Shown: positions 6,701-47,147 of the stretch, piece after piece
Layout of the letters: each line of letters opens with the position of its first letter
How positions within the stretch are numbered: position 1 is the stretch's first letter
Source: Bugula neritina
Taxonomy: Eukaryota; Animalia; Bryozoa
Length of the DNA: 64,000 nucleotides
Direction of reading: 5' to 3'
NCBI GenBank assembly: GCA_964035545.1
Contig: OZ037767.1
Span: 29,776,628 to 29,840,627 of the forward strand
The notes under the pieces: generated by a model
Told to the model about the DNA's origin: nothing
Seen by the model: only the letters and a program-made list of their open reading frames with translations
Databases searched by the model: none
Made by a program: the position numbers and the translations under genes

Positions 6701-6796
6701 ATTTGATACGTGCCCTAAATGAATTAGAACCTACTGAAAGTTAATTTTTTTTGAATCAGTTTAGTTAATTTCCCTGAGTGAAATTAAAGGGGGGAG

Positions 6797-7695: not shown

Positions 7696-9966
7696 CACCA
7701 AAGCTATCTTGTTCATGTAATAGTACTATAGTTCCTCCACTGTTTGTACCAGCTGATGTCAATGATGTGGCAGCAGTTTTTATGAGTTTGAATTTCCCAC
7801 GAGTTTCTAGGTCAGCATACCACTGTGGTTATGTAATACAAAAGGTCAGCAGCTTAACCCTTACGCGATCAATGGACCATATATGTCCCTGAAAGCGACA
7901 CTATCCACAGATCAATGGACCATATATGGTCTTTTAGGTAAATAAACGATAGCGCTTACTTTAAACTTCCAGTTTTCAACCGAAAAGCCTAAAAGTTTTT
8001 GTAATTGATGTTGATAGGGCAGCTTAGTAATTTTGGGATAATTAGAGCCCTTAAATCTGATTAAATTAATAGCTACCAAGCCAGCTAGTTGCTTTTCAAT
8101 TTAATCTCTAAATTTCAGAATTGTCGGTAAATATTAACGCTACTTTTAAATGCATGAAACTGCTGTCAAATCATAGAGAGCCAGTTTATTTTATTCAGAT
8201 TACATTTAGAAGAACATCTAAATAAACAGAAATGTTAAAGTCACTATATTTTGAATCATATTATAAATTAATTTTATCATTTTGAATTTTCAATTTTAAA
8301 ATGGCGGTTTTGAGAGGTCAAATTAAAATGACTTATTTTAGCTAGAATTGAGGTCTCCCGTCACTTTAAGAAGCTTTTTATAAAAGAAGATACTCTTAAA
8401 ATTATAATACCCAGTTTATTTAAAGCCAAAATCAAGTGTAACTTTTTAATAATGAAATTGAAAGTTAAGCAAAATTTGTTAGCAAATTTCGCGATAAACT
8501 CAAACGAGGCTTAAAATTACGTAACTTCAAAGTTGATCGCCAAAGGGTTAAATAACATGTGCACATGAATGAGCCGCCTATGAAAATTCATAGATGCATT
8601 TTTGTCTTTAAAATCAAACAGGTTCTTTGAATATGCTAAGTAAAAATTTTATTATATATTAATTTTGAAAAGATATAGCAAGCACTGGGCTAGTCAGCGA
8701 TTTAATTCCCAGTTTTGGCGATTGGTGGTGTTAGTAAGAGTAACCAGTCAAGAGTCAAAATTGCTGTCTTGTCACAATATAGGCATATCTGTGTGAGCTA
8801 AATGGATTTTTAGTATATTACATCATAAACTGTAAGATAAAAGTTTCACTAAATGAGAATTTAATGTAAAAAAAGAAGCAAATATTGAAAAGTGTGTCCT
8901 CATTCACGCTGTTTGAACACACATGAAGTTTTCCTTCTGCCTGCCAAGTGAAGCAGTGTTTATGCCAGCCATACAGTGTGTACATAGGTGTGTTGGTCAA
9001 CTTCATTCTGTATTTTCTTTTGATAGTCTCTCTTATTATATTGCGGCTGGTAAATCTTAAAGCAAACTCATTATCTTCACCTGCCAGGTAACACAAATAA
9101 AATTTTGTTTCTACTGCAGCCTCAAAATTATTCTAGTTATGAGTTGGGTATTATATCATATATAATTATAATGGAGCAATGAAATTACTGATTCAGTAGA
9201 AGCTAGCGAGGATGACCTTAATCATGTTGTGATTAGCTGCTCAAGTGTTAAATAATGTTTTTGTATTTTATGATGACAAATCTAAAACAATAAGATGTTT
9301 TAGATTATATTTTAAATGTTGAATATAAAAACAAACTTATATTAAATCAGATTACCTGGGACAGAAATAGAAAACAGGTATCTGCCAGTTTCAGTTGATA
9401 GGAAACCTTTAGAAAGCCAGAAACAGCAGGTAAAGTTTGAGAGTGCAGGTAAGTTTTCCTGGTATACATAATCAGTAGTAGATCTGTGTTGTGTGTATAC
9501 TGGGAGTTGCTTGCTCCTGCCACCTTTAGAACATAAATGTTAAGGTGTGTTGCTTAGCAGAATGTTGAGAGTTTTAGACTAATTTAGAAGTATTGAACAC
9601 TGAGTATCATATTTGAATATACAGTATTACAAACATATTACAAATTTATTGAAGCTGTTTAAAGTATATTACAGATATATTACAAAGATGCTGCAGGAAT
9701 AGTTAAAAATCAACTATTTTTTTAAAAACAATTTGCAAAGTCTAAAATTCAAAGGCAAAGTTTGCCAAAAACTGCTGTTGAAAGATTTTTGCAATACAAA
9801 TAATTAAAATGTCTACATATGAAATAACGTTTGGAACCTTACAGTTGGTATAGGGGTTGTATATAATAAAGTATTATATTATGTTATATTAAATACAGCA
9901 TGAACACTCACCTGAAATAAAGCCACAATTTGAGTAGAAAATAATCAAAGTGTGTAGAAAAAGCAT
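7696..9966 (-). CDS. Pentraxin-PAN/apple protein, copy 1 (type A); exons 1-4 only, remainder expected left of the BEL insertion outside the window
   Basis: Exons 9966-9912 (signal peptide MLFLHTLIIFYSNCGFIS), 9523-9356, 9080-8923, 7822-7696. GT-AG boundaries with consistent phases. Motifs FTCCFW, EDNEF, WHKHCFTWQ, LLHEQDSFG. Confidence 0.85.
7858..8547. mobile_element. piggyBac-type non-autonomous element (690 bp)
   Basis: TTAA on both sides (7854-7857, 8548-8551). Ends CCCTT...AAGGG with a 13/15 TIR match. Internal 19-bp direct repeat gatcaatggaccatatatg. The paralogous empty site cagcTTAAataacatg is at ~20281. Confidence 0.92.
8681..8800 (+). repeat. Degraded tRNA-SINE-like fossil in intron 3 (also ~12601-12712, ~20412-20530, ~25174-25285, ~31531-31655)
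   Basis: B-box-like GGTTTGATTCCC / GGCTCGAATCCC, followed by a segment resembling the GTCAGGAAGGGCATCC...AAATTGC body seen in invertebrate SINEs. Present and diverged in all five paralogs. It does not join the flanking exons in an open frame. Confidence 0.45.
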
Positions 9967-11233
9967 ATTCAGCGTTAAGCTGGTGCCTTCTTTATTAGAG
10001 ATGCACATATTTTGAAGCGCCTTCAAACTACATCTCAAGTTTTAACTAAACAACTGAAGAAAGTAATATATATATGTATATTAATATGTAGTATCAAAAA
10101 GATTATTGATTTCCAACATTTTTAATTTACTTATGCATATATATAATTTCTTCAACCTATAATTGCATCTATTTTATTGCCTTTTCTAATTAAGTTCATA
10201 AACAAAGACTCGTTTGTTAATATGCAGGTACTGGAAAGAAAAGAAATTTTACTGTCCATCACTTCTACAAGGCAAAGCTTTAAAGACATGTTTTATATCT
10301 GCAGCTAATAATTTAATTCATTAAGCAGATTAAGACCATTGGATGTGCGACTTAATATTCAAAGGTAGTTGGCAACTTAACAACTCATCAATTATTTTAT
10401 TATATATATTCAACTATATTACCAATAATACTTTATATTGAGTTTTCACTGTTGATGAGTAAAGGTATATAACACCTATATACCTATACGTAACTGTTAT
10501 TACATACCCTGTTTCATTATTTATAGCAGGAGCATCAAACAAACCTGCCAACACATTATCCAATTCAACTGGTTGAGTCAATATTCTGTTCAAACAATTC
10601 CCTGGTGACAGGTAATGACATGTGCTATAAAACCGTATTGTAAGCAAGCAAATTAAGTCAATATTAATATAATATTATTGCTTGAAAGTCAACAAACCTT
10701 TGTGTATTAATGTTATAAGCATTACCATGTATGATTGTAACATCTAAATTACTTATGTGTTTATATGTGATATACATATATATAATTAAATCTTAAATAA
10801 AACAGCACAAAAAGAAAAAAAAATTAATTGTATAAAGTGACAATCTTTTGAATAGCTGAAGCACTGAGCTAACCTAACAACAAAATTTCTATGGCACTAA
10901 TAGGTTATTGTCTTCTCCTGAAAACTTTTCAATATAAGACTTGCACTTAGGCCAAAGAGCCACAACTCTAATAAATGATGCATTCATTGTACATTGTGCA
11001 TTCATTACTTGCAGAAAAATCTTGCAGTGCTAACAAAACTTACAAAAAATAAAAAATATTCTACACAATAAAACCGGAACACGTTTTAAACTCGATATCC
11101 GATTTGCAAAAATTGTTCTTTACAGCATTTTTCTGCAATTAAACACAAAGAAATAAATAGACACAGATATTATACATATTATATAATGATTTATTAACTA
11201 TTACATCATACAGTCACTATATGCTGAGTATAA

Positions 11234-14200
11234 CTAAACAGTACAGTCTCTAGAAGTATAATGTACAGTATATTCTCCATATCCATCTGTTAGACTCACA
11301 TCATCTAGATCTGTGACATCATACAACTCACAACTTCCTGTTTGTATATCATAGTTTACTGACTGACAGAGACTACTGGATGTACAGATACGAATACACT
11401 GTGCAGCTGACTTTACAGTGTGAGTAGATACTGTGTGAGCATCTATTCTAGAACCTTCCACTTTACAGAACATCATTTGCTGACTGTCTCCTCTGTAGCT
11501 CTTTTGAAAAGCTACGGACTCTTTATCTAAAGGGAAGGCAAGTATACATGCAGTGTAACAGATACCTGCAAGCACCTGCAAGCACCTGCAACAGCTCATG
11601 AAAATAAAAATTTAGTCGGTTGATGATTTGCTTAATGCTTACTCATTATACTTGATAATTCATTTAAAAATCATGTCTTTTAGTCTTAAGCAGCTGCTTA
11701 ACTGAATACATCGAGTTCTTTATCTTCTTTGTTTGGCCTAATTATAGATTTCTTACAAAGTAATTGAATATTTATCTGAGTTTTTGAATGTTATAAAAAT
11801 CATTTTGTTTTTTAATACTGGCTTAGCACAGCTCACCATTGCAAGGAAAGTTTTCATAAATTATGTCAGCTTGACCCATAAACTTCAGAGTATCCCAGTT
11901 TATAACATTTCCTCTGTCATTACACCCCAACTCTTCTATTTCTGTCTCTGTTAGTACGTAGTCCCACATGTTGAATAAAGCAACTTTTCCTGGTACTGAC
12001 TGTATCAATTGTAAATCACCTTTTAAATTAAAAAGAGCACATAACTTCAAAGCATAACAAATAACAGTGATAAAATACCACAGGAACCATTTTATTATAC
12101 ATAATTATATAGGATATATAACCTTTTTAAACATCCATGCTCAGTACAAACTGATCGGTCATCAATATGATAATGCTTATACTATATGCAATGTTAAATG
12201 GGTTCATTATAAACTGTTATACTGTGTGCAAATAAAGCATTACTCAATATTGCATAACTAATATGAAATAGTGTCCAGAAAACACAAAGCTACATCAAGT
12301 AGCTTTACTCACCACCAAATTCATCTTGTTCATGTAATAGAATTATAGTTCCTCCACTGTTTATACCAGCTGATGCAAATAATGTGGCAGCAGTTTGTAT
12401 GAGCTTGAGTTTCCCACGAGTTTCTAGGTCAGCATACCACTGTGATTGAATAATATAAAAGTCTGCATTTTCAATAATATTATGTGAATGAGCATGCAAT
12501 TATGAACATTCTTAGTTGCAATTTGTTTGTCAATACCAAACATATTATCCTGCAAAAAGTTTCAAAGTTATATATATGTGTACCAATAAAGAGATTTAGG
12601 GAGCAATAGTCGAATTGAGTCAGTAGATCGAATTCCAGTAACTCGAGTTGTCAGAAAGAGTAATTAGTCAAAATTGCCTTTTGCCACAGTATAAACAAGT
12701 CCGTTTGAGTTAAATAAATTGAAAGTATATCAACTACAAAACTCTAAGTTATATTGACCGAGTATTTTAATATAAAAATATGACTGAATAGTTCAAAGTT
12801 AGTCTTCATTGCCCAGTATCTTCAAGCTGTTCAAACTCACGGCAAGTTTTCCTTCTGCCTGCCATGTGAAGCAGTGTTTATGCCAGCCATAGAGTGTGTA
12901 CATTGGTGTGTTGGTCAACTCCATTCTATATGTATTTCTGAGAGTCTCTTGTATATTGCCGTTGATGAAGCTTAAAGCAAACTCATTATCTTCACCTGCC
13001 AGGTAACAATATTAAAATTACACATACAATGCACTAATAATACAATAAAATTCAATAATAAAGTAATTATAAAATAAAAATTATACAATGCCAATAATAC
13101 CACACAACAATACAGTCCAATAAAATAATACAATAATGCAGTAATAAGACATACAATTATATAATATAACTGTATAATAAAATAACATTGTTAAGCAAAC
13201 TATGCTATAAACTAATAAAATAATATTACATAAAATCAAACAAACGATTTACTTGGCAGAGAAATAGTGAACAGAAATCTATCAACTGTCGTTGGCAAGT
13301 GACTTTTGGAGAGCCAGAAACAGCAGGTGAAGTTTGAGAGTGCAGGTAGATTTTCCTGGTATACATAATCAGTAATAGATCTGTGTTGTGTGTACACTGG
13401 GAGTTGCTTGCTCCTGCCACCTTTAGAACAACATTAGAATAACTAGCTTATAGTGGTAACTTGTATAATAGCTTGGTTTCATCCCAGATAGACGCTTCCC
13501 AGTTGGACGCTATTTTTTATTTTGGTACCATAATAATGTATATGCATTACCTGTTGTATTGATTGCTAAATAGCTAATACGCTTATATAATTATATATAA
13601 TAGCTAATATAAAGTGTTTGGAATAATAGCCTACTTTTCACTGATTTGTGTAGGGCAAAAAACAGTAATACATTAATAATAGACATTATTTTTAATGAAT
13701 ACTTATTAAAGAAATAGTTTTTTCAAACAAAAAGAAATATAGAATATGAAATAATTAAGTTAATGCAGAGCAAAGGAATTTATTTATGTGCTAGATAGCA
13801 AAGAATTGATCCAAGTTTATTTAAATATACATATATTTCAATAATATTCAAATAAGTTGCACATAAAATATATATTGTACCAAAATAAATAAATAGCGTC
13901 TAACTGGGAAGTGTCTACCTGTGATGACACCAATAGCTTGCGTAAATGAGAAGCAAGCACAGCACAGGTTTTATATTTATTTAAAGCAAAGCTATAAAAT
14001 AATGCTATTTGCTTTTAATAACAATTAGTTATATATACAAGCCTTGTTTAACAAGCTTTATTAATTAACATATTGTTTACATGGTTTTACAATAATCTAT
14101 ATATATTACATGATTCTATACATAATATATTTCATGGCTTTATAATATATTACATATATTTGATGATTCTATACATGATAATATGTCACATAATTATATA

Positions 14201-14300
14201 TATTACACCTTGCATTATACTGATAAAATAACATACCTGCAGTGTAATGACTAACACAAAGCTGCCAACTTATGTATAGAAACAGACAATATTTCGTCAT
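11234..14300 (-). CDS. Secreted pentraxin-PAN/apple protein, copy 2 (type B), ~329 aa
   Basis: Exons 14300-14237, 13420-13253, 12995-12841, 12439-12313, 12019-11837, 11526-11234 give a 990-nt open frame. Signal peptide MTKYCLFLYISWQLCVSHYTA. Pentraxin motifs HEQDEFGG, FNMWDYVL, GNVINW. PAN motif CIRIC...CQSVNY...CEL. Confidence 0.9.
13475..13931. mobile_element. MITE with ~55-bp TIRs and 8-bp TSD (Mutator/Merlin-like); second copy at 26051-26502
   Basis: GGTTTCATCCCAGATAGACGCTTCCCAGTTGGACGCTATT... is inverted at the right end. AATAGCTT is duplicated on both flanks. Found at the same site in intron 1 of both type-B genes. Confidence 0.85.
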
Positions 14301-14377
14301 CTTCAACTCAAAGTCTAAGTAGCAAAACCTGGTGGTCCAGTGAAGGCTGTAACTGTTATCTGGACAAACACTGTGCT

Positions 14378-14390
14378 GATTTATATGCTT
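14378..14390 (-). promoter_or_regulatory. Putative TATA box of type-B/mosaic pentraxin genes (also ~27110, ~32980)
   Basis: TATAAAT on the minus strand ~85 nt upstream of the ATG, conserved in three paralogs. Confidence 0.45.
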
Positions 14391-15132
14391 ATTATGACGT
14401 ATTGATTTTACTTATTTATAATATTATTGATTGATTCCTAGCAACTAATGCTTAATAAAACACTTGGATTATTATATTTTATCTGTTTGAATCTTTTGCA
14501 ATTTAGCTTTTAGCTAAGCAGAAAAATATTAAAAGATTTCTTTGATGACGCTGCTTTAATTATTACATTAAATCACTGTTTATTTCTATTATAATGACTA
14601 CTAGTAATGCACACTATAGTGAAACGTAGCAATAAAATTATAATTCTTGTCATCATTCCAGATAATTATTTAGTAGATGAAAGCATTGTATTTATAATCA
14701 ATATATTTTCATTTATTTTGTGAATGTTTATCAAGCATTTTTTTTATCATAAAACAAGACTCAATTTAAACATTTTAATTGCAATTTGTGAATCATATTA
14801 GAAAATTTTATTTACTGTTTTGGCAAATTAGACTTACTTTTCTAAACATTGCTATATTTACACTACTATAGTGAGAACTTTGTCTTCTGTTATTTGAGTT
14901 ATGATTGGAATTAGTTGAATAATTAGACTGTGGTCATAGATTTGCTAACATAAGTTATACGCCTTTGAATATATTATACACTGTTTATTAATAAATCCTT
15001 TAAAATTAAACATGAATAGTTTATATAATTGTATTATGCTATATATTATATTACTGTACATTATATTATATTACTGCACCAGTAGAATATAGCAGTCATG
15101 CATTTACCTTCATAATATTTAGTGTTTTCTGT

Positions 15133-15138
15133 AGCAGT

Positions 15139-15204
<66 letters not shown>

Positions 15205-15228
15205 AGCAGAAGCAAAAGCAGCAGCAGG
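15133..15228. repeat. (CAG)n microsatellite, unit 1
   Basis: 20 pure CAG (15141-15200) with an impure tail. Confidence 0.97.
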
Positions 15229-16179
15229 AGGATTATATTGATTACAATTTTAAAGACTAGCCAATTGTTTGTTTCTATTTTAGACGGATTGACATTACAT
15301 TGTTTTAGCATGCCAGAAATGGAAATAACACCGGATGCACTACCTATATGGACAGGATTTCTAAAATCGACTTTTCTAACAAGTCAAGCAATTCAATTAA
15401 AACAGTTTGAAGATAAAAAAGATTAAAGTAAATATGCAGCAATCAAAGTCACGGCTCAATTTAATCCAATATAGCTTTTGTAACCACATTTGTGACTTTT
15501 TTAAAAACAAGTATGGGCCATCTTATTGTCAAACCTAAAAACATAAATTTAACATAAGAAATAAGGCTACCTTGAAGCTATCAAAGAATAACACGAGTTT
15601 ATTTGAATAATTCCGAAATTATTGGCTTTACAGCCATGACTGTTTTAACTACAATTTCATTGAAATGAAAGTTGAGTTGATTAACTGTTTTTAACTGCTG
15701 AAGTTGAAGCTTACATCAAGCTAAAGATGAGCTATAAAAAGAGCTTTGTTATGTTTGAAGAGTATGTAGACTTTGAAGCCTTGCACATACAAGAAAACCT
15801 GAGCTATAGTGAATGACAAGAAAAGCTGCATAGATATATAGAAAGCCAGATAAAAAATATTAGATACGGGAGAGTAGAACAAAAACATTTACAACATACT
15901 ATAATTTATTAATTGTGTGTTCAAGTGTTACAACAGTGGGAAGAGCTATAACGACAGGCATAAGTATTAACCAATAAAAATAAAGTAGCAGCATTCACTA
16001 ATTAGTATTATGTTTAGCTAAATTTTGTGGTTATTTATAGTTGCTATACACAGCAAAATAGTTACGTCATTTTTTATAGACTTGATGAATGAATTGTTAA
16101 AGTTTTTCTTTCCTTTTCTTAAGATACTGTTTGATTGCTCTGTATTTTCTGGAGTATGTGTTGTTGACATTACATGAGA

Positions 16180-17688
16180 ATAGACCATGTAAAACTCAGC
16201 CAATCAGCGAAGTGTACCAGGTCAATGTCTTACCATTGTAACTGATATAAAATTCTGCAAGTTCAATTGCAAAATGCATGCTTCTAAAAGCTAGTTGTGC
16301 ATTTTTTTTTTCATGCATTATTTAATTTCATATCTTAAATTGATGACTCTTGAAATGATTTTTTAAAATGTCTAAATTAAGTGTTTATAAAACGCAATTA
16401 AAAATTGCATGTCTAGAAAAATGACCTGGTACACTTTTGCAACTTAAAGCCAATTATTACATAACTGCCAGCTTAGTAGTTATTTGTTGTTGCAGCTTGA
16501 ATGGGTTATTGTTTAGCATTGGAAGCTTGCAGTAAACATCTGTGAATTTGGTACATGACTTTGATTGGCTGGTTTTTGAATGGCCCTTTAGTATATGCAT
16601 CTGGATGGCTGGGTAGTGTAGACTCCGCCTACATCTAGCTAATGTACAGTAGCCAATCCACAGTAGTATTACAAAATTTCTGTTTAACAAATGAAATATT
16701 CTGGTCATTTGTTTTGTACTTTACAATAGTAAATATTCTATTCAACTAGAATTTTATTGTATGTAAGCCATGGGAACTACTAAGAGGTTAAATCAACCAC
16801 CCATGCTGGTAATATTGTAGCTCGCAGTAATAACAAGTCCACACCATATAAATATACACATAAGCTATTATGTGCAGCTTATGAATGCTGAAATGACCCC
16901 ATTTCTTACTTTCAATTTGAAAAAATTGTATTACATATTCTGCCACTTCTGCACCAGAAACTTGTTTTCCTTTTAAATTTTGAAAATAGTAGTCAGTTTC
17001 TATAGCAGTCAACATCCACAATAAACAACGTAAGCTTTCAAATAAACTATAAATATATGAAATATTGGTGTGGAAACAATGTAATTTATTCATTGCTATG
17101 ATGAAAAATTACAAGAATATTATATAAAAGCTAGATATAGATTTCTATAAAATGGCACAGGTAAAAATAACACATTTTTACTTCAAATTCTAAATTTCAT
17201 CAGTCACCAATGGTGGCTGTAGATTACAGAGAGCATAGCAGACTATCATAATCATAAGGATGGTCAGCCCACTGAGCAAAATCCAACTCCAACCTTTCAT
17301 TTGGGCTACCAACACACTAAAGCATATAATGTAAGACGCACAAAAAACAGTGGTTTTAATGAAACATGTGAAGGAAGCGAACAGAAAACGTCTTCAACAG
17401 AGTCAGCTGATATAGAGCAACAGAACTCATCTGACAGCCAGCCTCATAGTCAGACTTCATCAGAAGTAACTGAGTTACCAGAATCATCAACTACTCATAA
17501 AAAAAGATCTGCACATTCTATTGATAGACGAAAATCAAAAGTTGGAAGAAAAGGCTCAAAAAGTTCCACGTTTAAACAAAAAGCAACTATTGAAAAAGTA
17601 AAAGTTTTTAAAACTTTCACCACTACAGATGAGCAAACTAAATTCTATACTGGAATACCTACACGTTCTCTATACTATTTTTTAGCAA
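16180..17688 (+). pseudogene. Degenerate THAP + DDE_Tnp_4-type (ISL2EU/Harbinger group) transposase remnant
   Basis: Segment absent from units 2 and 3 (compare ~28840 and ~34885). Translates HKDGQPTEQNPTPTFHLGY (THAP C-terminal PT motif) and DEQTKFYTGIPT (FYTG motif preceding the transposase HTH). Truncated and frameshifted. Confidence 0.7.
16207..16440. mobile_element. Small inverted-repeat element nested in the transposase remnant
   Basis: Perfect 15-bp inverted repeat AAGTGTACCAGGTCA (16210-16224) / TGACCTGGTACACTT (16422-16436). Confidence 0.6.
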
Positions 17689-17799
17689 GCTATATGCATT
17701 AGCGTCTACTTGAATTATTATTTGTAACTTAATTGTCTCATCATTGTATTATATGCAAATATAAATCAAGTTGAAAGCTTTTGACTTTTGTAGCAGCTG

Positions 17800-18568
17800 C
17801 TAAAATTGTGTTGTTGAAATCTTATCCAAAATTTGTGCTAAGATCTTTATTTTAGCTTCTTCAAGTTTCAACTTTTTAACTTCGAGCTCATAGCTTTTAT
17901 CATTTGTTTTACCAAGACGAGAAAGCAAATCTACAGTTTGACTGTTTAAGTGGAATCTGCGACTTTCTAGTTTTCTCCCTCTTTCAATTGGCTTGCGGTG
18001 TTGGTAGTGTTGGCCATGGATAGCTCTCTTTCTTTCTCTTGCTATGACACTCCTTGACTTTTTCTTGTGACTTTTGCACTTCTTGACTCCTCTAAGAAAT
18101 ATATGATGTTTTATACATCTACAAGTTTAAACTTGTATATACATCTCTATACTGCATGTCTTATATACACGCCCTTGGTTATAAAGCTGCAGAATCGTAA
18201 TATTTATAATAATAGATAATTTGCCTTTTTCAATCAGAGCTTCTAATATATTTTGTAATAAAAAGCCTGTAAATTATAGCCAATAATTTAAATTAAAGTA
18301 ATTTGTAATCAGCAGAGAAAAAATATAGAGAAGTAAAATCGCAACCTTGACTCTTCTGAACTCCTCTCTGTATCTGTGTTCTGATTGGACAACAGCAGCT
18401 GAGGTGGCTTTTCTATTGGTGCTAGTTTTGGCAGTTGGGGTCTAGTTTGTTGGAGTTGTCTAACTTGTTGTTCTTGATGCTGTAGCTTGTGATCTTGTGG
18501 TTCTTGCAATAATTGCTGAGATTGTGTGTGCATTTGTAGTTGATGCTGTTGCTCTGCAAGATCAGGTT
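17800..18568 (-). pseudogene. Orphan duplicate of the last two exons of the gene at 34976-47147 (frame intact)
   Basis: Exons 18568-18346 (Gln-rich) and 18091-17800 (basic region, coiled coil, TAG). Near-identical to 35744-35522 and 35267-34976. Splice sites intact; upstream exons absent. Confidence 0.75.
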
Positions 18569-19007
18569 CTTAGCAATATATTGCATATATAAATATGACT
18601 GTATAATTTTTACATGCTAATTTTTTAAGTTATCAAAGCTGGTGCAACTGCTAGTATACAAATGCATGTAGTTCGATCAATTTTTCTTATTAATATAAGC
18701 TTTAAGTTTATAAATACAAACTTATATGCCACAAAACCAAGGCCTATATTGATAAACATTGCTATGAAATTTTATTTCATAAATCGGAAATGGTTTTCTC
18801 AAAACAGCAAAAAAATCATGAAAAGTACTATAATGAATCCAAAACATGCTTTCAATATGAAATCCAATTTGCAAAAATATGGATTAAATTGTTATTTACA
18901 TCAATTTTCTGCAATTAAACACAAAGAAACTATAAATAGACACAGATATTACAACTATGCAATGATTTATTAACTATTACATCATACAGTTACTATACTG
19001 AGTATAA

Positions 19008-21693
19008 CTAAACAGTACAGTCTCTAGAAGTATAGTGTACAGTATATTCTCCATATCCATCTGTTAGACTCACATCATCTAGATCTGTGACATCATACAA
19101 CTCACAACTTCCTGTTTGTATATCATAGTTTACTGACTGACAGAGACTACTGGATGTACAGATACGAATACACTGTGCTGCTGACTTTACAGTGTGAGTA
19201 GATACTGTGTGAGCATCTATTCTAGAACCTTCCACTTTACAGAACATCATTTGCTGACTGTCTTCTCTGTAGCTCTTTGGAAAAGCTACGGACTCTTTAT
19301 CTGAAATAAAGGCAAGCATACATGCACTGTAACAAGCACCTGCAAGCACCTGCAAGCACCTGCAAGCACCTGCAAGCACCTGCAAGCACCTGCAATAGCT
19401 CTGAAAGTACAAATTTCTGCAGCATTTAGTCAGTTGCAATCTGGAGTTCAAAAACAGTATTGGTTGTATTATTGAAGCTGAGATTTTGATGCTTCGCCTA
19501 CTCATTCTACTTGATAATTCATTTAAAAATCTTGCTTTGTTCTAGTCTTAAGCAGCTGCTTAACTAAATGCATTGGATTCTTTATATTATCTTACAAATT
19601 TCTTATCTGAGTTTTTGTCCTTTACAAAAATCATTTTGATTTTTAATAGTGACAGCACAGCTCACCATTACAAGGGAAGTCTTCATAAATTATGTCAGCT
19701 TGACCCATAAACTTCAGAGTATCCCAGTTTATAACATTCCCTCTGTCATTACACCCCAACTCTTGTATTTCTGTCTCTGTTAGTATGTAGTCCCACATGT
19801 TGAATAACGCTACTTTTCCTGGTACTGACTGTTTCAATTCTAAGTTACCTTATAAATGTAAAAAATGTACACTTTGAAATTACAATGACTAAAAGTAATA
19901 AACTACTACACTAAGGTGAATGCGCATAATTATTATACATGTATAAAGTGTATAGCCTTTGAAACTATTCACTCTGTATATAATAAGGTTTAAACATTTA
20001 CGGTGTTCAACGGATAAATTTTAAACTGTTACATTGTATAATTCTGCAAATAAAACATTATACCTAATATTGTGCATATATGTGATCAACTGCAAGAAGC
20101 ACCAAAAGCAGTATAGTTTTACTCACCACCAAAGCTATCTTGCTCATGTAGTAGTACTATAGTTCCTCCACTGTTTGTACCAGCTGATGTCAATGATGTG
20201 GCAGCAGTTTGTATGAGTTTGAGTTTCCCACGAGTTTCTAGGTCAGCATACCACTGTGGTTAAGTAATACATAAGGTTAGCAGCTTAAATAACATGTGAA
20301 TGAGCTGCCTATGAAAATTCATAGCTGCATTTTTGCCATTAAAATCAAACAGATTCTTTGAATATGCTTAGTAAAAATTTTATTATATATTAATTTTGAA
20401 TAGATATAGCAAGCACTGGCCTAGTCAGTGGTTTGATTCCCAGTTTTGGCGATTGGTGGTGTTAGTAAGGGTAACCAGTCGGCAGTCAAAATTGCTGTCT
20501 TGTCACAATATAGGCATATCTGTTTGAGCTAAATAGATTTTTAGTATATTACATCATAAACTGTAAGATAAAAGTTTCACTAAATGAGAATTTAATGTAA
20601 AAAAAGAAGCAAATATTGAAGAGTGTGTCCTCATTCACGCTGTTTGAACACACATGAAGTTTTCCTTCTGCCTGCCAAGTGAAGCAGTGTTTATGCCAGC
20701 CATACAGTGTGTACATAGGTGTGTTGGTCAACTCCATTCTGTATTTTCTTTTGATAGTCTCTCTTATTATATTGCGGCTAGTAAATCTTAAAGCAAACTC
20801 ATTATCTTCACCTGCCAGGTAACACAAATAAAATTTTGTTTCTACAGCCTCAAAATTATTTGAGTTATGAGTTGGGTATTATATCATATATAATTATAAT
20901 GGAGCAATGAAATTACTGATTCAGTAGAAGCGCGCTAGCGAGGATGACCTTAATCATGTTGTGATTAGCTGCTCAAATGTTAAATAATGTTTTCGTATTT
21001 TATGATGACGAATCTAAAACAATAAGTTGTATTAGATTATATTTTAAATGTTGAATATGAAAACAAACTTATATTAAATTAGATTACCTGGGACAGAAAT
21101 AGAAAACAGGTATCTGCCAGTTTTAGTTGATAGGAAACCTTTAGAAAGCCAGAAACAGCAGGTAAACTTTGAGAGTGCAGGTAAGTTTTCCTGGTATACA
21201 TAATCAGTAGTAGATCTGTGTTGTGTGTACACTGGGAGTTGCTTGCTCCTGCCACCTTTAGAACATAAATGCTAAGGTGTGTTGCTTAGAAGAATGTTAA
21301 AAGTTTTAGACTAATTTATAAGTATTGAACACTGAGTATCATATTTGAATATACAGTATTACAAACATATTACAAATTTATTGAAGCTGTTTAAAGTATA
21401 TTACAGATATATTACAAAGATGCTGCAGGAATAGTTAAAACTAAACTAATTTTTTAAAAAGAATTTGCAAAGTCTAAAATTCAAAGACAAAGTTTGCCAA
21501 AAACTGCTGTTGAAAGATTTTTGCAATACAAATAATTAAAATTTCTACATATAAAATAATGTTTGGAACCCTACAGTTTGTATATTTTTGTTGTATATTA
21601 TAATGAAGTATTATATTATATACAGCATAAAAACTTACCTGAAATAAAGCCACAATTTGAGTAGAAAATAATGAAAGTGTGTAGAATAAGCAT
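19008..21693 (-). CDS. Secreted pentraxin-PAN/apple protein, copy 3 (type A), ~327 aa
   Basis: Exons 21693-21639, 21255-21088, 20811-20654, 20253-20127, 19848-19666, 19300-19008 give a 984-nt open frame. LLHEQDSFGGNLELKQS...NMWDYIL parallels CRP LGQEQDSFGGNFEGSQS...NMWDFVL. Confidence 0.9.
19334..19395. repeat. 10-bp VNTR (GCACCTGCAA)n in intron 5; paralogous tracts ~11564-11591, ~23309-23345, ~30467-30514
   Basis: Directly visible: 3, 6, 4 and 5 CCTGCAA units in copies 2, 3, 4 and 5. Confidence 0.95.
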
Positions 21694-22491: not shown

Positions 22492-22523
<32 letters not shown>

Positions 22524-22977
22524 TTAAATCTTAAATAAAACAGCTGGAAAAGACAAAATAATTTGTTGCATAATATTTGTATAAAGTAACAATCTTCTTA
22601 ATAGCTGAATCATTGAGCTAACCTAACAACAAATCTTCTATGATACTAATAAGTTGTTGTCCTCTCCCGAAAATTTTCCAATGTATAAGACTTGCACTTA
22701 GGCCAAAAGGTCACAACTCCAACAACTGATGCATTGTACATTGTGCATTCATTACTTAAAAAATGAGCTTGCAGTGCTAACAAAACTTACAAAAATAAAA
22801 AATATACTACACAATAAAACCAGAACACATTTTAAACGCGATATTTAATTTGCAAAAATTGTTCTTTACAGCAATTTTCTGCAATTAAACACAAAGAATT
22901 AAATAGACACAAATATTATACATATTATATAATGATTTATTAACTATTACATCATACAGTCACTATACTGAGTATAA

Positions 22978-25900
22978 CTAAACAGTACAGTCTCTAGAAG
23001 TATAATGTACAGTATATTCTCCATATCCATCTGTTAGACTCACATCATCTAGATCTGTGACATCATACAACTCACAACTTCCTGTTTGTATATCATAGTT
23101 TACTGACTGACAGAGACTACTGGATGTACAGATACGAATACACTGTGCTGCTGACTTTACAGTGTGAGTAGATACTGTGTGAGCATCTATTCTAGAACCT
23201 TCCACTTTACAGAACATCATTTGCTGACTGTCTCCTCTGTAGCTCTTTGGAAAAGCTACGGACTCTTTATCTAAAGGGAAGGCAAGCATACATGCAGTTT
23301 AACAGATACCTGCAAGCACCTGCAAGCACCTGCAAGCACCTGCAATAGCTCATGAAAATAAAAATTTAGTGTTGATGATTTGCTTAATGCTTAAAGCCTG
23401 GCCACACGATCGTGAGAATCACACGAAATCGTCTATTTGACACGAAAAAACATTCGTACGAGAAAATTTGAGGGAATTCTAACGAAATCGTCATCGTTGT
23501 GTACACACAACGATGACGATGGACGAAAAATCACAATCCACGATAAGTACCATTTGATTGGTCAATAAAATTCTAGCAACAGTGATTATTTCATTTCTAC
23601 TACGTTTCTCTATATTTGGCAATTTTCTGCTGCTTGTATCTCGTGCAAGACTCTTTCATGGACTAATAAAAATGACTTGTTGCCACCAAAGTGGTATTTA
23701 TTAGGGGTATATATAGTATAAACGCCAAATATTTACTACAAATTTCAAAAATAGCATAAATTAAGTAGTATTACCATGCCTATTTGCATCCAATTACCTA
23801 GTCTTACATTTATAGCAGCTGTAATGTATTTTGCGTAAAATAGCTATTGCAAGCATTATTCAATTCATATTCACATTGTAATCACAGCTTAAACTTTATA
23901 GCTTTGTATTTACGTACATGAGTGAGTTTTAAATTTTTTTTAAAATTTTATATGCATAAAAAATGTGTTTAAAAATTTTACCAATAAACAAAACTAACAA
24001 GTGTACACATAAAATACCAAAAAAATAACAAAAATGGCAAAATCTTTCCTTTATAGTTTATAACTTATATAAACTTGCGGTACCAATTCTGGCATAAAGA
24101 CTTTTCGTCTAACGAGTGTGTGGCTGGTCAATACGAAAAGATAACTCACGAAAATAGTCACACGAGTTTCGTGTGATTCTCACGATCGTGTGGCCAGGCC
24201 TTTACTCATTATACTTGATAATTCATTTAAAAATCATGTTTTTTCAGTCTTAGGCAGCTGCTTAACTGAACACATTGAGTTCTTTATCTTCTTTGTTCAG
24301 CCTAATTATAGATTTCTTACAAAGTAATTGAATATTTATCTGAGTTTTTGAATGTTATAAGAATCTTTTTGTTTTTGTAATACTGGCCTAGCACAGCTCA
24401 CCATTGCAAGGAAAGTTTTCATAAATTATGTCAGCTTGACCCATAAACTTCAGAGTATCCCAGTTTATAACATTTCCTCTGTCATTACACCCCAACTGTT
24501 CTATTTCTGTCTCTGTTAGTACGTAGTCCCACATGTTGAATAACGCTACTTTTCCTGGTACTGACTGTATCAATTGTAAATCACCTTTTAAATTAAAAAG
24601 AGCACATAACTTCAAAGCATAACAAATAACAGTGATAAAATACCACAGGAACCTGAATGTGCATTTTATTATACATAATTATATATAATTTCCAACCTTT
24701 TTAAACATTCATACTCAGTACAAACTGATCGGTCATCAATATGATAATGCTTATACTATATGCAGTGTTAAATGGGTCCATTATAAACTGTTATACTGTG
24801 TGCAAATAAAGCATTACTCAATATTGCATAATTAATATGTAATAGTGTCCAGGAAACACAAAGCTACATCAAGTAGCTTTACTCACCACCAAATTCATCT
24901 TGTTCATGTAATAGAATTATAGTTCCTCCACTGTTTATACCAGCTGATGCAAATAATGTGGCAGCAGTTTGTATGAGCTTGAGTTTCCCACGAGTTTCTA
25001 GGTCAGCATACCACTGTGATTGAATAATATAAAAGTCTGCATTTTCAATAATATTATGTGAATGAGCATGCAATTATGAACATTCTTAGTTGCAACTTGT
25101 TTGTCAATACCAAACATATTATCCTGCAAAAAGTTTCAAAGTTATATATATGTGTACCAATAAAGAGATTTAGGGAGCAATAGTCGAATTGAGTCAGTAG
25201 ATCGAATTCCAGTAACTCGAGTTGTCAGAAAGAGTAATTAGTCGAAATTGCCTTTTGCCACAGTATAAACAAGTCCGTTTGAGTTAAATAAATTGAAAGT
25301 ATATCAACTACAAAACTTTAAGTTATATTGACCGAGTATTTTAATATAAAAATATGACTGAATAGTTCAAAGTTAGTCTTCATTGCCCAGTATCTTCAAG
25401 CTGTTCAAACTCACGGCAAGTTTTCCTTCTGCCTGCCATGTGAAGCAGTGTTTATGCCAGCCATAGAGTGTGTACATTGGTGTGTTGGTCAACTCCATTC
25501 TATATGTATTTCTGAGAGTCTCTTGTATATTGCTGTTAATAAAGCTTAAAGCAAACTCATTATCTTCACCTGCCAGGTAATACGATTAAAATTACAGGTA
25601 TTCACTGCAACAATAATACAACACAATTTAATAATAGAGTAATTACAAAATAAAAATTATACAATGCCAATAATACCATACAACAATACAGTCCAATAAG
25701 ATAATACAATAATGCAGCAATAAGACATACAATTATATAATATAACTGTATAATAAAATAACATTGTTAAGCAAACTATGCTATAAACTAAGAAAATAAT
25801 ATTACATAAAATCAAACAAACGATTTACTTGGCAGAGAAATTGTGAACAGAAATCTATCAACTGTCGTTGGCAAGTGACTTTTGGAGAGCCAGAAACAGC

Positions 25901-27029
25901 AGGTAAAGTTTGAGAGTGCAGGTAGATTTTCCTGGTATACATAATCAGTAATAGATCTGTGTTGTGTGTATACTGGGAGTTGCTTACTCCTGCCACCTTT
26001 AGAACAACATTAGAATAACTAGCTTATAGTGTTGACTCGTATAATAGCTTGGTTTCATCCCAGATAGACGCTTCCCAGTTGGACGCTATTTTTTATTTTG
26101 GTACCATAATGATATATATACATTAACCGTTGTATTGATTGCTAAATAGCTAATATGCTTATATAATTATAATAGCTAATATAAAGTATTTGGAATAATA
26201 GCCTACTTTCACTGATTTGTGTGGGGCAAAAAACAGTAATACATTAATAACAGACATTATTTTTAATGAATACTTATTAAAGAAACAGTTATTTCAAACA
26301 ACAAGAAATATAGAATATGAAATAATTAAGTTAATGCAGAGCAAAGGAATTTATTTATGTGCTAAATAGCAAAGAATTGATCCAAGTTCATTTAAATATG
26401 CATATATTTCAACAATTTTTAAATAAATTGCACATAAAATATATATTGTACCAAAATAAATAAATAGCGTTTAACTGGGAAGTGTCTATCTGGGATGACA
26501 CCAATAGCTTGAGTAAATGAGAAGCAAGCACAGCACAGGTTTTATATTTATTTAAAGCAAAGCTATAAAATAATGCTATTTGCTTTTAATAACAATTAGT
26601 TATATATACAAGCCTTGTTTAACAAGCTTTATTAATTAACATATTATTTTACATAGTTTTACAATAATCTATATATTACATGATTCTATACATAATATAT
26701 TTCATGGCTTTATAATATATTACATATTTGATGATTCTATATATGGTATGTCACATATTAGTTATATATACAAGCTTTGTTTAACAAGCACTATTAATTA
26801 ACATATTATTTTACATGGTTTTACAATAATCTATATATTACATGATTCTATATACACAATATATTTCATGGTTCTATAATATATTACATATTTGATGATT
26901 CTATATATGATATGTCACATAATTCTATATATTAAACCTTGCATTATACTGATAAAATAACATACCTGCAGTGTAACGAATAACACAAAGCTGCCAGCAT
27001 ATGTATAGAAACAGACAGTATTTCAACAT
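22978..27029 (-). CDS. Secreted pentraxin-PAN/apple protein, copy 4 (type B), ~329 aa
   Basis: Exons 27029-26966, 25996-25829, 25569-25415, 25013-24887, 24584-24402, 23270-22978. Same exon lengths and phases as copy 2. Confidence 0.9.
23394..24201. mobile_element. PIF/Harbinger-type MITE (808 bp)
   Basis: 35-bp TIR A(A/G)GCCTGGCCACACGATCGTGAGAATCACACGAAA with one mismatch and a TTA TSD. The empty site aatgcTTActc is at ~11635 in copy 2. Confidence 0.93.
26051..26502. mobile_element. MITE, paralog of 13475-13931
   Basis: Same TIRs and AATAGCTT TSD. Confidence 0.85.
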
Positions 27030-27859
27030 TTTCAACTCAATCTCTGAGCAGCTGTTACCTGCTGTTTCGGCTGAGGGCTGTAGCTGTTATCTGGGCTAGC
27101 ATTGTGCTGATTTATATGCTTATTATGACGTATTGATTTACTTATTTATAATATTATTGAGTGATTCCTAGCAACTAATGCTTAATAAAACACTTAGATT
27201 ATTATATTTTATCTGTTTGAATCTTTTGCAATTTAGCTTTTAGCTAAGCAGGAAAATACTAAAAGATTTCTTTGATGACGCTGCTTTAATTATTACATTA
27301 AATCACTGTTTATTTCTATTATAATGACTACTAGTAATGCATACTATAATGAAACGTAGCAATAAAATTATAATTCTTGTCATCATTCCAGATAATTATT
27401 TAGTAGATGAAAGCATTGTATTTATAATCGATATATTTTCATTTATTTTGTGAATGTTTATCAAGCATTATTTTTATTATAAAACAAGACTCAATTCAAA
27501 CCTTTTAATTGCAATTTGTGAATCATATTAGAAAATGTTATTTACTGTTTTGGCAAATTAGACTTACTTTTCTAAACATTGCTATATTTACACTACTATA
27601 GTGAGAACTTTGTCTTCCGTTATTTGAGCTATGATACAAATTAATTGAATGATTAGACGGTGGTCCTAGATTTGCTAACATAAATTATAAGCCTTTGAAT
27701 ATATTATACACTGTTTATTAATAAATCCTTTAAAATTAAACATGAATAGTTTATATTGTATTATGCTATATGTTATATTACTGTACATTATATTATTATG
27801 ATGCACCAGTAGAATATAGCAGTCATGCATTTACCTTCATAATATTTAGTGTTTTCTGT

Positions 27860-27861
<2 letters not shown>

Positions 27862-27900
<39 letters not shown>
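27862..27900. repeat. (CAG)13 microsatellite, unit 2
   Basis: Directly visible. Confidence 0.97.
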
Positions 27901-27903
<3 letters not shown>

Positions 27904-28964
27904 CAATATATTGATTATAGTTTTAAAGACTAGCCAATTGTTTGTTTCTATTTTAGACGGATTGACATTACATTGTTTTAGCATGCCAGAAATGGAAATA
28001 ACACCGGATGCACTACCTATATAGACAGGATTTCTAGAATCGACTTTTTTAACAAGTCAAGCAATTCAATTAAAATAGTTTGAAGATAAAAAAGAACAAA
28101 GTAAATATGCAGCAATCAAAGTCACGGCTCAATTTAATCCAATATAGCTTTTGTAACCACATTTGTGACTTTTTTTAAAAACGAGTATGGGCCATCTTAT
28201 TCTCAAACCTAAAAACATAAATTTAACATAAGAAATCAGGCTACCTTGAAGCTATCAAAGAATAACAGAGTTTATTTGAATAATTCCGAAATTATTGGCT
28301 TTACAGCCATGACTGTTTTAACTATAATTTCATAGCTGGCATTGAAATGAAAGTTGAGTTAATACTGTTTTTAACTGCTGAAGTTGAAGCTTACATCAAA
28401 GTAAAGATGAGCTATAAAAAGAGCTTTGTTATGTTTGAAGAGTATGTAGACTTTGAAATCTTGCACATACAAGAAAACCTGAGCTAGTGAATGGCAAGAA
28501 AAGCTGCATAGATATATAGAAAGCCAGCTAAAAAATATTAGATACGGGAGAGTAGAACAAAAACATTTACAACATACTATAATTTATTAATTGTTTGTTC
28601 AAGTGTTACAACAGTGGGAAGCGCTATAACAACAGGCATAAGTATCAACCAATAAAAATAAAGTAGCAGCATTCACTAATTAGTATTATTTTTAGCTAAA
28701 TTTTGTGGTTACACAGCAAAATAGTTACATTATTTTCTATAGACTTGATGAATGAATTATTAGAGTTTTTCTTTCCTTTTTTTAAAATACTGGTTGAATG
28801 CTCTGTATTTTCTGGAGTATGCATTGTTGACACTACATGAGAGTTGCTATATGCATTAGCATCTACGTAAATTATTTCAGTATACTTGTCTTGTAACTTT
28901 TTTCATCATTGTATTATATGCAAATATATATCAAGTTAAAAGCTTTTGACTTTTGTAGCAGCTG

Positions 28965-29699
28965 CTAAAACTGTGTTGTTGAAATCTTATCCAAAATTTG
29001 TGCTAAGATCTTTATTTTAGCTTCTTCAAGTTTCAACTTTTTAGCTTTGAGCTCATAGCTTTTATTGTCTGTTTTACCAAGATGAGAAAGCAAATCTACA
29101 GTTTTCTCGCTCTTTCAATTGGCTTGCAGTGACGGTAGTGTTGGCCATGGATAGCTCTCTTTCTTTCTCTTGCTATGACACTCCTTGACTTTTTCTTGTG
29201 ACTTTTGCACTTCTCAATTCCTCTAAGAAATATATAATGTTTTATACATCTACAAGTTTAAACTTTTATATACATCTCTATACTGCATGTGTTAAATACA
29301 CACCTTTGATTATAAAGTTGCAGAACCATAATATTTATAATCATAAATAATTTGCCTTTTTCAATCAGAGCTTCTAATATATTTTGTAATAAAAAGGCTG
29401 TAAATTATAGCCAATAATTTAAGTTAAAGTAAATTGTAATCAGCAGAGAACACATATAGAGAAGTAAAATCGCAACCTTGACTCTTCTGAACTACTTTCT
29501 GTATCTGTGTTCTGATTGGACAACAGCAGCTGAGGTGGCATTTCTATTGGTGCTAGTTTTGACAGTTGGGGTCTAGTTTGTTGGAGTTGTCTAACTTGTT
29601 GTTCTTGATGCTGTAGCTTGTGATCTTGTGGTTCTTGCAATAATTGCTGAGATTGTGTGTGCATTTGTAGTTGATGCTGTTGCTCTGCAAGATCAGACT
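28965..29699 (-). pseudogene. Second orphan duplicate of the neighbour's last two exons, frameshifted
   Basis: Near-identical to 34976-35744 but with a 34-nt deletion at ~29104 bounded by AGTTT microhomology. Confidence 0.75.
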
Positions 29700-30136
29700 C
29701 TTAGCAATATATTGCATATATAAATATGAGTGTATAATTTTCACCATGCTAATTTTTTAAGTTATCAAAGCAACTGCTAGTATACAAATGCGCATGTAGT
29801 TCGATCAATTTTTCTTATTAATATAAGCTTTAAGTTTATAAATACAAACGTATATGTCACAAAACCAAGGCTTATATTGATAAACATTGCTATGAAATTC
29901 TATTTCATAAATCGGAAATGGTTTTCTCAAAACAGCAAAAAAATCATAAAAAGTACTATAATGAATCCAAAACATGCTTTCAACATGAAATCCAATTTGA
30001 AAAAAATATGGATTAAATTGTTATTTACATCAATTTTCTGCAATTAAACACAAAGAAACTATAAATAGACGCAAATATTATAACTATGCAATGATTTATT
30101 AACTATTACATCATACAGTTACTATGCTGAGTATAA

Positions 30137-32900
30137 CTAAACAGTACAGTCTCTAGAAGTATAATGTACAGCATGTTCTCCATATCCATCTGTTAGACTC
30201 ACATCATCTAGATCTGTGACATCATACAACTCACAACTTCCTGTTTGCATATCATAGTTTGCTGACTGACAGAGACTACTGGATGTACAGATACGAATAC
30301 ACTGTGCTGCTGACTTTACAGTGTGAGTAGATACTGTGTGAGCATCTATTCTAGAACCTTCCACTTTACAGAACATCATTTGCTGACTGTCTCCTCTGTA
30401 GCTCTTTGGGAAAGCTACAGACTCTTTATCTGAAATAAAGGCAAGCATGCATGCACTGTAACAAGTACCTGCAAGCACCTGCAAGCACCTGCAAGCACCT
30501 GCAAGCACCTGCAATAGCTCTGAAAGTACAAATTTCTGCAGCATTTAGTCAGTTGCAATCTGGAGTTCAAAAACAGTATTGGTTGTATTATTGAAGCTGA
30601 GATTTTGATGCTTCGCCTACTCATTCTACTTGATAATTCATTTAAAAATCTTGCTTTGTTCTAGTCTTAAGCAGCTGCTTAACTTAATGCATTGGATTCT
30701 TTATATTCTCTTACAAAGTAATTGAGTTTTTATCTGAGTTTTTGACCGTTACAAAAATCATTTTGATTTTTAATGACAGCACAGCTCACCATTACAAGGA
30801 AAGTTTTCATAAATTATGTCAGCTTGACCCATAAACTTCAGAGTATCCCAGTTTATAACATTCCCTCTGTCATTACACCCCAACTCTTGTATTTCTGTCT
30901 CTGTTAGTATGTAGTCCCACATGTTGAATAACGCAACTTTTCCTGGTACTGATTGTTTCAATTCTAAGTTACCTTATAAATGTAAAAAATGTACACTTTG
31001 AAATTACAATGACTAAAAGTAATAAACTACTACACTAAGGTGAATGCGCATAATTATTATACATATATAAAGTGTATAGCTTTTGAAACTATTCACTCTG
31101 TATATAATAAGGTTTAAACATTTACGGTGTTCAACGGATAAATTATAGACTGTTACATTTTATAATTCTGCAAATAAAACATTATACTCAATAATGTGAA
31201 TATGTGATAAACTGCAAAAAGCACCAAAAGCAGTATTGTTTTACTCACCACCAAAGCTATCTTGTTCATGTAGTAGTACTATAGTTCCTCCACTGTTTGT
31301 ACCAGCTGATGTCAATGCTGTGGCAGCAGTTTTTACGAGTTTGAGTTTTCCACGAGTTTCCAGGTCAGCGTACCACTGTGGTTAAGTAACACAAAAGGTC
31401 AGCAGCATAAATAATATGTGAATGAGCAGCTTATGAACATTCATAGCTGCATTTTTGTAATTATAATCAAACAGATTCTCTGATTACACATAGTAATCAT
31501 TATTTTATATGGTAACTTTAAAAAAATTCAGCATGCACTGGCCTAATATCAATGGCTCGAATCCCAGTAATGGCCATTGCTGATGTCCGCAAGGTTAACG
31601 AATCAGCAGTCAAAATTGCCGTTTTGCCACAATATAAACAGGTCTGTTTGAGCTAAATGGATTGTTAGTATATTACATCATCAACTATAAGACTAAAGTT
31701 TCTCTAAATGAGAATTTAATATAAAAAGAGTGAATAGTGAAAAGTGAATAGTTTGTCTTCATTCAAGCTGTTCAAACTCACATCAAGATTTCCTTCTGCC
31801 TGCCAAGTGAAGCAGTGTTTATGCCAGCCATAAAGTGTGTACATTGGTGTGTTGGTCAACTCAACTCTATATGTATTTTTGAGAGTCTCTCTTATATTGC
31901 CGTTGATGAAGCTTAAAGAAAACTCATTATCTTCACCTGCCAGGTAACACAATTAAAATTACACATACAGTAAAACAATAATACAATACAATTTAATAAT
32001 ACAATAATTATAAAAAAACTATACAGTGACAATAATATCATACACCAATAAGATAATAAAATAACACAGTAATAAAACATACAGTAATATAATATAACTG
32101 TATAATAAAACAATAATATGAAAACTTAAACTATATGCAATAAAGTGATAAAATAATACTGTATAAAATCAACAAACAACCAACAAACAATTTACCTGAC
32201 ACTGAAACAGAGAACAGAAATCTTTCATTTGGCATTGGCAAGTAACCTTTGGAGAGCCAGAAACAGCAGGTGAAGTTTAAAAGTGCAGGTAAGTTTTCCT
32301 GGTAGATATAATCAGTAATAGATCTGTGTTGTGTGTACACTGGGAGTTGCTTGCTCCTGCCACCTTTAGAAAACCGGTAAAATAAATGTTAAATGTTATG
32401 TTAAGTCATATATAATTGTTATTGCAATAACAACCTGAGTAAATGACAAGCAAGTGCAGCACTGGTTATATTTTATTTAAAGCAAATATATTTAAGTTAT
32501 ATAAAAATAATTCGATTTCAATAACAAAGTTATTATACATGCCTTGTTTGTCATGTTCTATTAATATCTATTACATGGTTCTACATATTATATTATACTA
32601 CATGGCTCTACATATTATATTATACTACATGGTTCTACATATTATATTATATTACATGGTTCTACATATTATATTATATTACATGGTTCTACATATTATA
32701 TTACACTACATGGTTCTACATATTATATTATACTACATGGTTCTACATATTATATATTACATTGTTTATATATGCATACATATTATATATTACATGGCTA
32801 TATATATAATTTATATATACGGATAAAATAACATACCTGCAGTGTAAGGAATAACACAAAGCTGCCAGCTTATGTATAGAAACAGACAATATTTCAACAT
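30137..32900 (-). CDS. Secreted pentraxin-PAN/apple protein, copy 5 (mosaic: B-like 5' half, A-like 3' half), ~329 aa
   Basis: Exons 32900-32837, 32363-32196, 31936-31782, 31375-31249, 30972-30790, 30429-30137. Open frame. Confidence 0.9.
32570..32800. repeat. 24-bp minisatellite (tattacatggttctacatattata)n in intron 1 of copy 5
   Basis: About nine tandem units. Explains the spurious repetitive ORF 32443-32826. Confidence 0.9.

Positions 32901-34975: not shown

Positions 34976-47147
<12,172 letters not shown>

Follow-up and report, generated by a model that had tools for sequence, protein, structure and literature searches.

Tandem pentraxin-PAN genes of the bryozoan Bugula neritina combine divergent pentraxin heads with a homogenised PAN tail: a candidate recognition family

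A locus of the bryozoan Bugula neritina raises the question of what is achieved by a tandem series of genes whose products end in almost the same PAN domain, while the pentraxin domains in front of it belong to old and divergent types. The locus lies in a stretch of 64,000 nucleotides of contig OZ037767.1 (assembly GCA_964035545.1, positions 29,776,628 to 29,840,627, forward strand), referred to here as the window, in which five paralogs, termed A to E, are arranged head-to-tail on the minus strand within positions 7696-32900. What is new here is that the PAN core of the array is near-identical even at silent sites, while deep pentraxin types persist in both assemblies compared. With a probability of about one half, we read the array as encoding calcium-dependent recognition proteins of varied specificity that share a PAN module, and whose role would be in recognising microbes.

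Exons in the window were located by self-comparison, in which duplications that overlap each other span 7.5-36 kb, and then by six-frame translation, their boundaries being drawn from recurring pentraxin-like and PAN-like pieces; searches, frame checks and ratios of replacement to silent change (dN/dS, or omega) were all done exon by exon. Copies A to D have six exons each (Table 1), with all introns GT-AG, phases 1, 1, 0, 1 and 1, coding lengths of 990, 990, 984 and 990 nt (327-329 residues) and no internal stop, as anticipated by the original prediction, which had been made from the letters of the window and had seen four intact six-exon copies. The same prediction spoke of at least five paralogs, and five are where it placed them, but this was an undercount: a genome search matched exon 5 and exon 6 nine times each within 53 kb of this contig (C3), and all nine genes are intact, so that tandem expansion with maintained frames was borne out. 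In copy E, intron 4 contains a Pao element, beyond which exons 5 and 6 are intact at 563-1343 nt outside the left edge of the window, and copies F to I occupy the next 22 kb. The nine frames are open despite three transposon insertions in introns.

The predicted architecture of signal peptide, pentraxin and six-cysteine apple domain was recovered as well. First, the first exon is hydrophobic (18-21 residues, called a signal peptide by eye rather than by a predictor) and joins the pentraxin directly, with no extra N-terminal domain. Second, in the profile check that had been proposed, exon 5 scores 32.3 bits against Pfam Pentaxin PF00354 (cut-off 25), exons 2-4 alone giving no score against this profile. 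Third, exon 6 scores 41 bits against PAN_1 PF00024 (cut-off 21.4), and its six cysteines are present in nine of nine copies. The mature protein has around 308 residues, for a subunit of about 35 kDa. The public full-length near-copy KAF6030105 (P0104), a model from a draft B. neritina assembly, reaches 75.3 bits over Pentaxin profile positions 17-189, and its five junctions are identical to those of our array models. In addition, two Logan contigs hold a paralog from contig C6 in spliced form, as six blocks that correspond in size, which backs the gene structure for the family, though not expression of the C3 array.

The genome holds 17 PAN-exon matches of the family, eight of which belong to more-divergent genes with the same exon series, on contig C7 (a tandem trio and three singles), on C6 and at the tip of C3. 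The trio, at 3.897-3.912 Mb of C7 (L006-L007), is a second tandem array, made of older paralogs. At 14.65 Mb of C7 a complete paralog is flanked by a lone exon 5 copy (L011:7547-7681) of opposite orientation, which probably arose by partial duplication with inversion.

The C3 array was judged not to be an assembly artefact, as exon 3 differs by up to 42% between copies and the array also occurs in the second, draft assembly. There, head types A/B/C, H, F/G and I are found in other numbers; for instance, G-type copies number two in our assembly and at least three per contig in the draft, a turnover in copy number whose counts on the draft side are soft, given its insertion-deletion errors and perhaps the presence of both haplotypes. 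This unlike copy content, together with same-type pairs that differ at 0.16-0.24 of silent sites against a mismatch of 0.09 in the flank, speaks for an allorecognition locus for colony self and non-self, in which haplotypes would display different sets of heads. However, we regard such a locus as highly improbable, because the proteins are predicted to be secreted and have no membrane anchor, because the two assemblies may come from different cryptic species (PMC11480708), and because the errors and possibly duplicated haplotypes of the draft bear on this very comparison.

The constancy of the tail reaches silent sites. Among the nine copies the PAN core differs by 1.4% on average, and silent divergence (pS), at 0.31-0.38 in exons 2-4, falls to 0.20 for exon 5 and further to 0.025 for the PAN core; deep pairs differ at 36 of 62 silent sites in exons 3-4 versus one of 53 in the PAN core (Fisher p 8.5e-12). 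The homogenised tract is local, with the first 45 nt of exon 6, intron 5 and the 3' flank past about 50 nt all divergent. It is also specific to each array. In the exon 6 tree a clade made of one assembly is not rejected (p 0.18), and one PAN-core site is fixed for a different base in each assembly (9 of 9 versus 14 of 14 copies). Compared between assemblies, the PAN core has a silent difference of 0.045-0.054 and the flank a difference of 0.09, a gap that for some 53 sites is within chance of the neutral rate. In the C7 trio, silent sites of the pentraxin exons are near saturation for the deepest pairs (pair a-b, pS 0.79-1.0 outside the tract), and in the PAN exon pS drops to 0.09-0.19 over the 3' half; the PAN sequence of this array is only 39% identical to that of the C3 array, and the tract is placed alike. 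The single-copy C6 gene has no deficit of silent change in its PAN exon.

Loss of silent divergence among paralogs, a fixed difference between assemblies and a normal rate in a single-copy relative are together the marks of concerted evolution, and since the constancy is both silent and array-specific, gene conversion within each array explains it most simply. Constraint on the PAN exon at the RNA level was rejected on the grounds of no folding signal (z +1.41), no Rfam match and the normal silent rate of the C6 paralog. These results also bear on an earlier proposal, namely, that a variable sensing domain is coupled to a constant, effector-recruiting module. The pattern of variable pentraxin and constant PAN sequence stands, but PAN constancy, which reaches silent sites, is explained by conversion, and from conversion alone the recruiting role does not follow. 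Such conversion may be favoured by selection, or may be a by-product helped by a 10-bp minisatellite beside the splice acceptor.

The by-product option leads to a near-neutral or dosage account of the whole array, in which copies are born and lost as redundant units, surface loops are relaxed, and PAN uniformity is mechanical, the most similar stretch converting most, perhaps aided by the minisatellite. In keeping with it, the minisatellite adjoins the tract in all copies, silent and replacement sites are homogenised alike, and omega is never significantly above 1. Yet the C7 array shows the same placement of the tract in a PAN domain of such different sequence; codons 9-60 of exon 5 and the framework of exon 2 are equally conserved as protein and nevertheless less homogenised; and divergent heads survive alongside frequent conversion in both assemblies. 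On balance, we consider the near-neutral account unlikely.

The heads present the opposite picture. Replacement changes are clustered in the linker (codons 1-14 of exon 6) and in one segment of each pentraxin exon, at codons 39-48 of exon 2, 6-26 of exon 3, 12-30 of exon 4 and 1-8 of exon 5. Two of these segments fall on the ligand pocket and calcium loop of C-reactive protein (CRP), as exon 3 codons 6-26 align with CRP 64-84, which holds F66, T76 and E81, and exon 5 codons 1-8 with CRP 145-152; those of exons 2 and 4 align with CRP 41-50 and 119-131. Parsimony counts, which here are made on recombining copies, give omega of 0.64-1.33 across the variable segments (0.67 for that of exon 3 and 0.94 for that of exon 5) versus 0.10-0.37 elsewhere. 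The framework is under purifying selection, and diversifying selection on the variable segments is plausible. Among copies, the variable segment of exon 3 carries a net charge of between -1 and +7. Thus, of the claim that this is a diversifying locus, the clustering of variation in few segments holds, while positive selection does not emerge from omega values of 0.6-1.3, none of them significant. In exon 3 trees copies group by head type across both assemblies, a clade of one assembly being rejected (p-AU ~1e-52), and the deep pentraxin types are therefore common to both. The repertoire is small, with three to four head types in the nine-copy array.

Full-length searches and folding used public proteins, namely, KAF6030105 from the draft assembly and P0023 from Logan. 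The pentraxin domain of the public near-copy was modelled with a pLDDT of 89.8, and a single-sequence fold (pLDDT 30) was discarded; the best structural matches in Foldseek are NPTX1, a Limulus SAP-like pentraxin, NPTX2 and CRP, with TM scores of 0.7-0.8. In CRP, calcium is held by D60, N61, E138, Q139, D140, E147 and Q150, and phosphocholine by a pocket formed by F66, T76 and E81 (PMC6503050). When the array is aligned with CRP, the equivalents of E138-Q139-D140 and Q150 are invariant in nine of nine copies, position 61 is Asn or Asp, and positions 60 and 147 are variable: copies A and C keep all seven ligands, position 147 is Gln, Asp or Asn in the other seven copies, and position 60 is Ser in F, G and I. 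Since the core ligands are kept, the array heads are likely to bind calcium, perhaps differently by copy because positions 60 and 147 vary. In contrast, the heads are unlikely to bind phosphocholine or to have a C1q site of the CRP type, because E81 aligns with Arg and Y175 falls in a gap; F66, which is not clearly kept, and T76 lie inside the most variable segment. The pentraxin signature, H-x-C-x-[ST]-W-x-[ST], is absent from every copy, His being replaced by Lys two residues before the Cys and the last place being Ala, Gly or Val.

The cysteines of the head bear on a second alternative, a non-immune job. Equivalents of the CRP C36-C97 disulfide pair are aligned and present in nine of nine copies, two further cysteines are common to the bryozoan family, and the head has five in total, an odd count that may leave one free. 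A free cysteine would suit a secreted protein with a matrix, adhesive, skeletal, neural or gamete-surface role, whose head and PAN would cross-link glycans or proteins. Neuronal pentraxins are among the top fold matches, PAN folds match cuticlin and ZP proteins, and PAN domains have been reported from lophotrochozoan shell proteomes, though not bryozoan ones (PMC13425148). However, the array copies have neither a coiled coil nor a repetitive structural region. In addition, old head types in both assemblies together with copy turnover are more typical of recognition families. We therefore take a non-immune job to be a rather doubtful explanation, if one to be kept in mind.

Several points weigh against recognition as the role of the array. 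The neuronal pentraxins among the best fold matches are non-immune proteins. Residues were mapped not through model coordinates but through a sequence alignment with 25% identity to CRP, and within the pocket this alignment is weak. In exons 2 and 4 the variable segments fall on what we take to be the subunit interface of CRP, not its ligand face. Neither does any segment have an omega significantly above 1 (best 1.33, p 0.23), and surface loops commonly drift at omega near 1. Lastly, PAN-core omega (0.36) is not unusually low, and gene conversion requires no functional cause.

If the array does encode recognition proteins, the following mechanism may be envisaged. Calcium would be held by the Gln that corresponds to CRP Q150 together with the kept Glu-Gln-Asp loop, and the head would bind a surface ligand, more likely an anionic glycan or lipid than phosphocholine, with a preference that differs by copy through the variable pocket segments. 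The near-identical PAN tail could act as a common docking or assembly module, through which heads of different tuning would all feed a single partner downstream. Copy number would shift by unequal crossing-over, and gene conversion would hold the tail uniform as the old types of head live on. The likeliest setting would be microbe recognition, either in defence or in symbiont handling.

It is tempting to extend this reading to cheilostome bryozoans at large, which may have their own soluble, germline-encoded system of variable and constant parts, in which selection keeps old pentraxin heads and selection-favoured conversion keeps one PAN tail per array, each array serving its own receptor or forming mixed oligomers. 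We offer this as speculation, and think it improbable in its full form. B. neritina hosts a bryostatin-producing symbiont (PMC11480708), and the Bugula version of such a system could include its recognition.

The architecture had been predicted to be recently expanded in tandem and lineage-specific. The C3 array is indeed a later expansion, but the architecture is older and goes beyond Bugula, where eight dispersed paralogs already carry it. Watersipora subatra has the same exon series including the PAN exon with the same phase-1 junction, an unannotated exon that lies 8.8 kb beyond the annotated stop (OY755168.1, L019:28327-28630; PAN_1 36.2 bits); the public model XP_067951392.1, which stops within intron 5, is probably truncated. 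A further Watersipora gene (L020) has two tandem pentraxin domains of bryozoan type, with no PAN exon in the stretch fetched. An initial metagenome scan gave no match, and contigs in ENA metagenomes revealed a further host, a third species, in which several paralogs have this series with its PAN exon. Because Watersipora and this host share the exon series, the fusion dates back at least to the split between Bugula and Watersipora, and the idea that the architecture was invented recently was discarded.

Homologs of full-length proteins came only from bryozoans, apart from one metatranscriptome-like protein, in a search of low reach from which absence elsewhere does not follow. Kinship with giant viruses was not accepted: the top feature matches of P0104 in the ESM Atlas are PAN-bearing Nucleocytoviricota clusters, 385-419 residues long, and only 103-106 of 256 features are common, which makes them no more than a lead. 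In the literature searched we found no description of the pentraxin-PAN pairing and almost nothing on bryozoan pentraxins. The family is real, intact and apparently undescribed.

Mobile elements and other features of the window are listed in Table 1. The BEL/Pao element is young, and the exons of its host, copy E, are still intact. The block co-duplicated with the array contains two stop-free stretches, one Gln-rich of 86 codons and one Lys/Arg-rich of 108 codons, which are about 85% identical in the other assembly, a conservation not above that of the flank; they have no Pfam match and were not found elsewhere in the genome. Possibly they are 3' exons of a neighbour gene that starts near 37.3 kb.

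Table 1. Features of the window (position 1 is its first letter). Exons are listed in coding order.
Feature	Position	Strand	Remarks
Copy A	30137-32900	-	exons 32837-32900 (signal peptide), 32196-32363, 31782-31936, 31249-31375, 30790-30972 (pentraxin), 30137-30429 (linker, PAN and stop); 329 aa
Copy B	22978-27029	-	exons 26966-27029, 25829-25996, 25415-25569, 24887-25013, 24402-24584, 22978-23270; 329 aa
Copy C	19008-21693	-	exons 21639-21693, 21088-21255, 20654-20811, 20127-20253, 19666-19848, 19008-19300; 327 aa
Copy D	11234-14300	-	exons 14237-14300, 13253-13420, 12841-12995, 12313-12439, 11837-12019, 11234-11526; 329 aa
Copy E, exons 1-4	7696-9966	-	9912-9966, 9356-9523, 8923-9080, 7696-7822
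PAN core of copy A (homogenised tract)	30137-30384	-	exon 6 minus its first 45 nt; same tract in each copy
10-bp minisatellite, copy A	30462-30514	.	immediately upstream of exon 6 acceptor
10-bp minisatellite, other copies	23308-23345 (B), 19333-19395 (C), 11564-11591 (D)	.	shorter or degenerate in E-I
BEL/Pao long terminal repeat (LTR) retrotransposon	1-7497	+	inserted in copy E (intron 4), in the opposite orientation; its two 701-bp LTRs are identical, the right at 6797-7497 and the left starting before the window; open reading frame 746-6700, open 1984-codon frame
Insertion with terminal inverted repeats and TTAA ends	7857-8548	.	intron 3 of copy E; putative piggyBac-type miniature element
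Insertion with terminal inverted repeats (miniature DNA element)	23390-24202	.	intron 5 of copy B
Ty3/gypsy element	42197-46933	+	LTRs 99.4% identical; open 1347-codon gag-pol frame
Block co-duplicated with the array	34900-36000, 28900-29930, 17700-18800	-	
Probable exocyst component 8 exon	62479-62910	-	weak Exo84_C match, E 4.5e-5

Among known systems, short pentraxins (CRP and SAP, and the Limulus CRP and SAP-like proteins) resemble the array in having a signal peptide followed by one pentraxin domain, in fold, in the C36-C97 cysteine pair and in the core calcium ligands, and horseshoe-crab CRPs likewise vary as a multigene family. The array differs by its C-terminal PAN domain, larger subunit, five introns, the Arg aligned with E81, the gap at Y175, the Lys in the signature and the two extra cysteines. 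Short pentraxins have subunits of 20-30 kDa that consist of a pentraxin domain and nothing else (PMC6503050); the array proteins, predicted to work in a similar manner, fall outside this class by their extra domain and the apparent lack of a phosphocholine pocket. Long pentraxins (PTX3, NPTX1, NPTX2 and NPTXR) also join a pentraxin to a second module, and NPTX1 and NPTX2 score best in sequence as well as in fold, but theirs is an N-terminal coiled coil whereas the array has a C-terminal PAN, so that it is not a long pentraxin; the name NPTXR given to near-copies in the draft annotation is a best-hit label rather than a statement of orthology. Snail FREPs and sea-urchin Sp185/333 are clustered paralogs with copy-number change, gene conversion, and conserved and variable parts. 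The array is alike in clustering, copy change, conversion, and its conserved and variable parts, with unrelated domains and a small repertoire.

It is among the invertebrate mosaic lectins that the array belongs, as in these, too, a recognition domain has been shuffled together with another extracellular module in particular lineages. The mosaics among our matches combine pentraxin with C-type lectin, fibrinogen, WSC, vWA or F5/8 domains, fibrinogen with PAN, and F5/8 with PAN, and such shuffling of pentraxin and PAN domains has produced many invertebrate mosaics; the pentraxin-then-PAN order itself was matched only in Bugula, Watersipora and the ENA metagenome host. Within this class, the family provides a concrete, small and expressible candidate recognition set, with defined head types and a shared tail, and conversion limited to the PAN domain in two independent arrays gives it a clear evolutionary signature.

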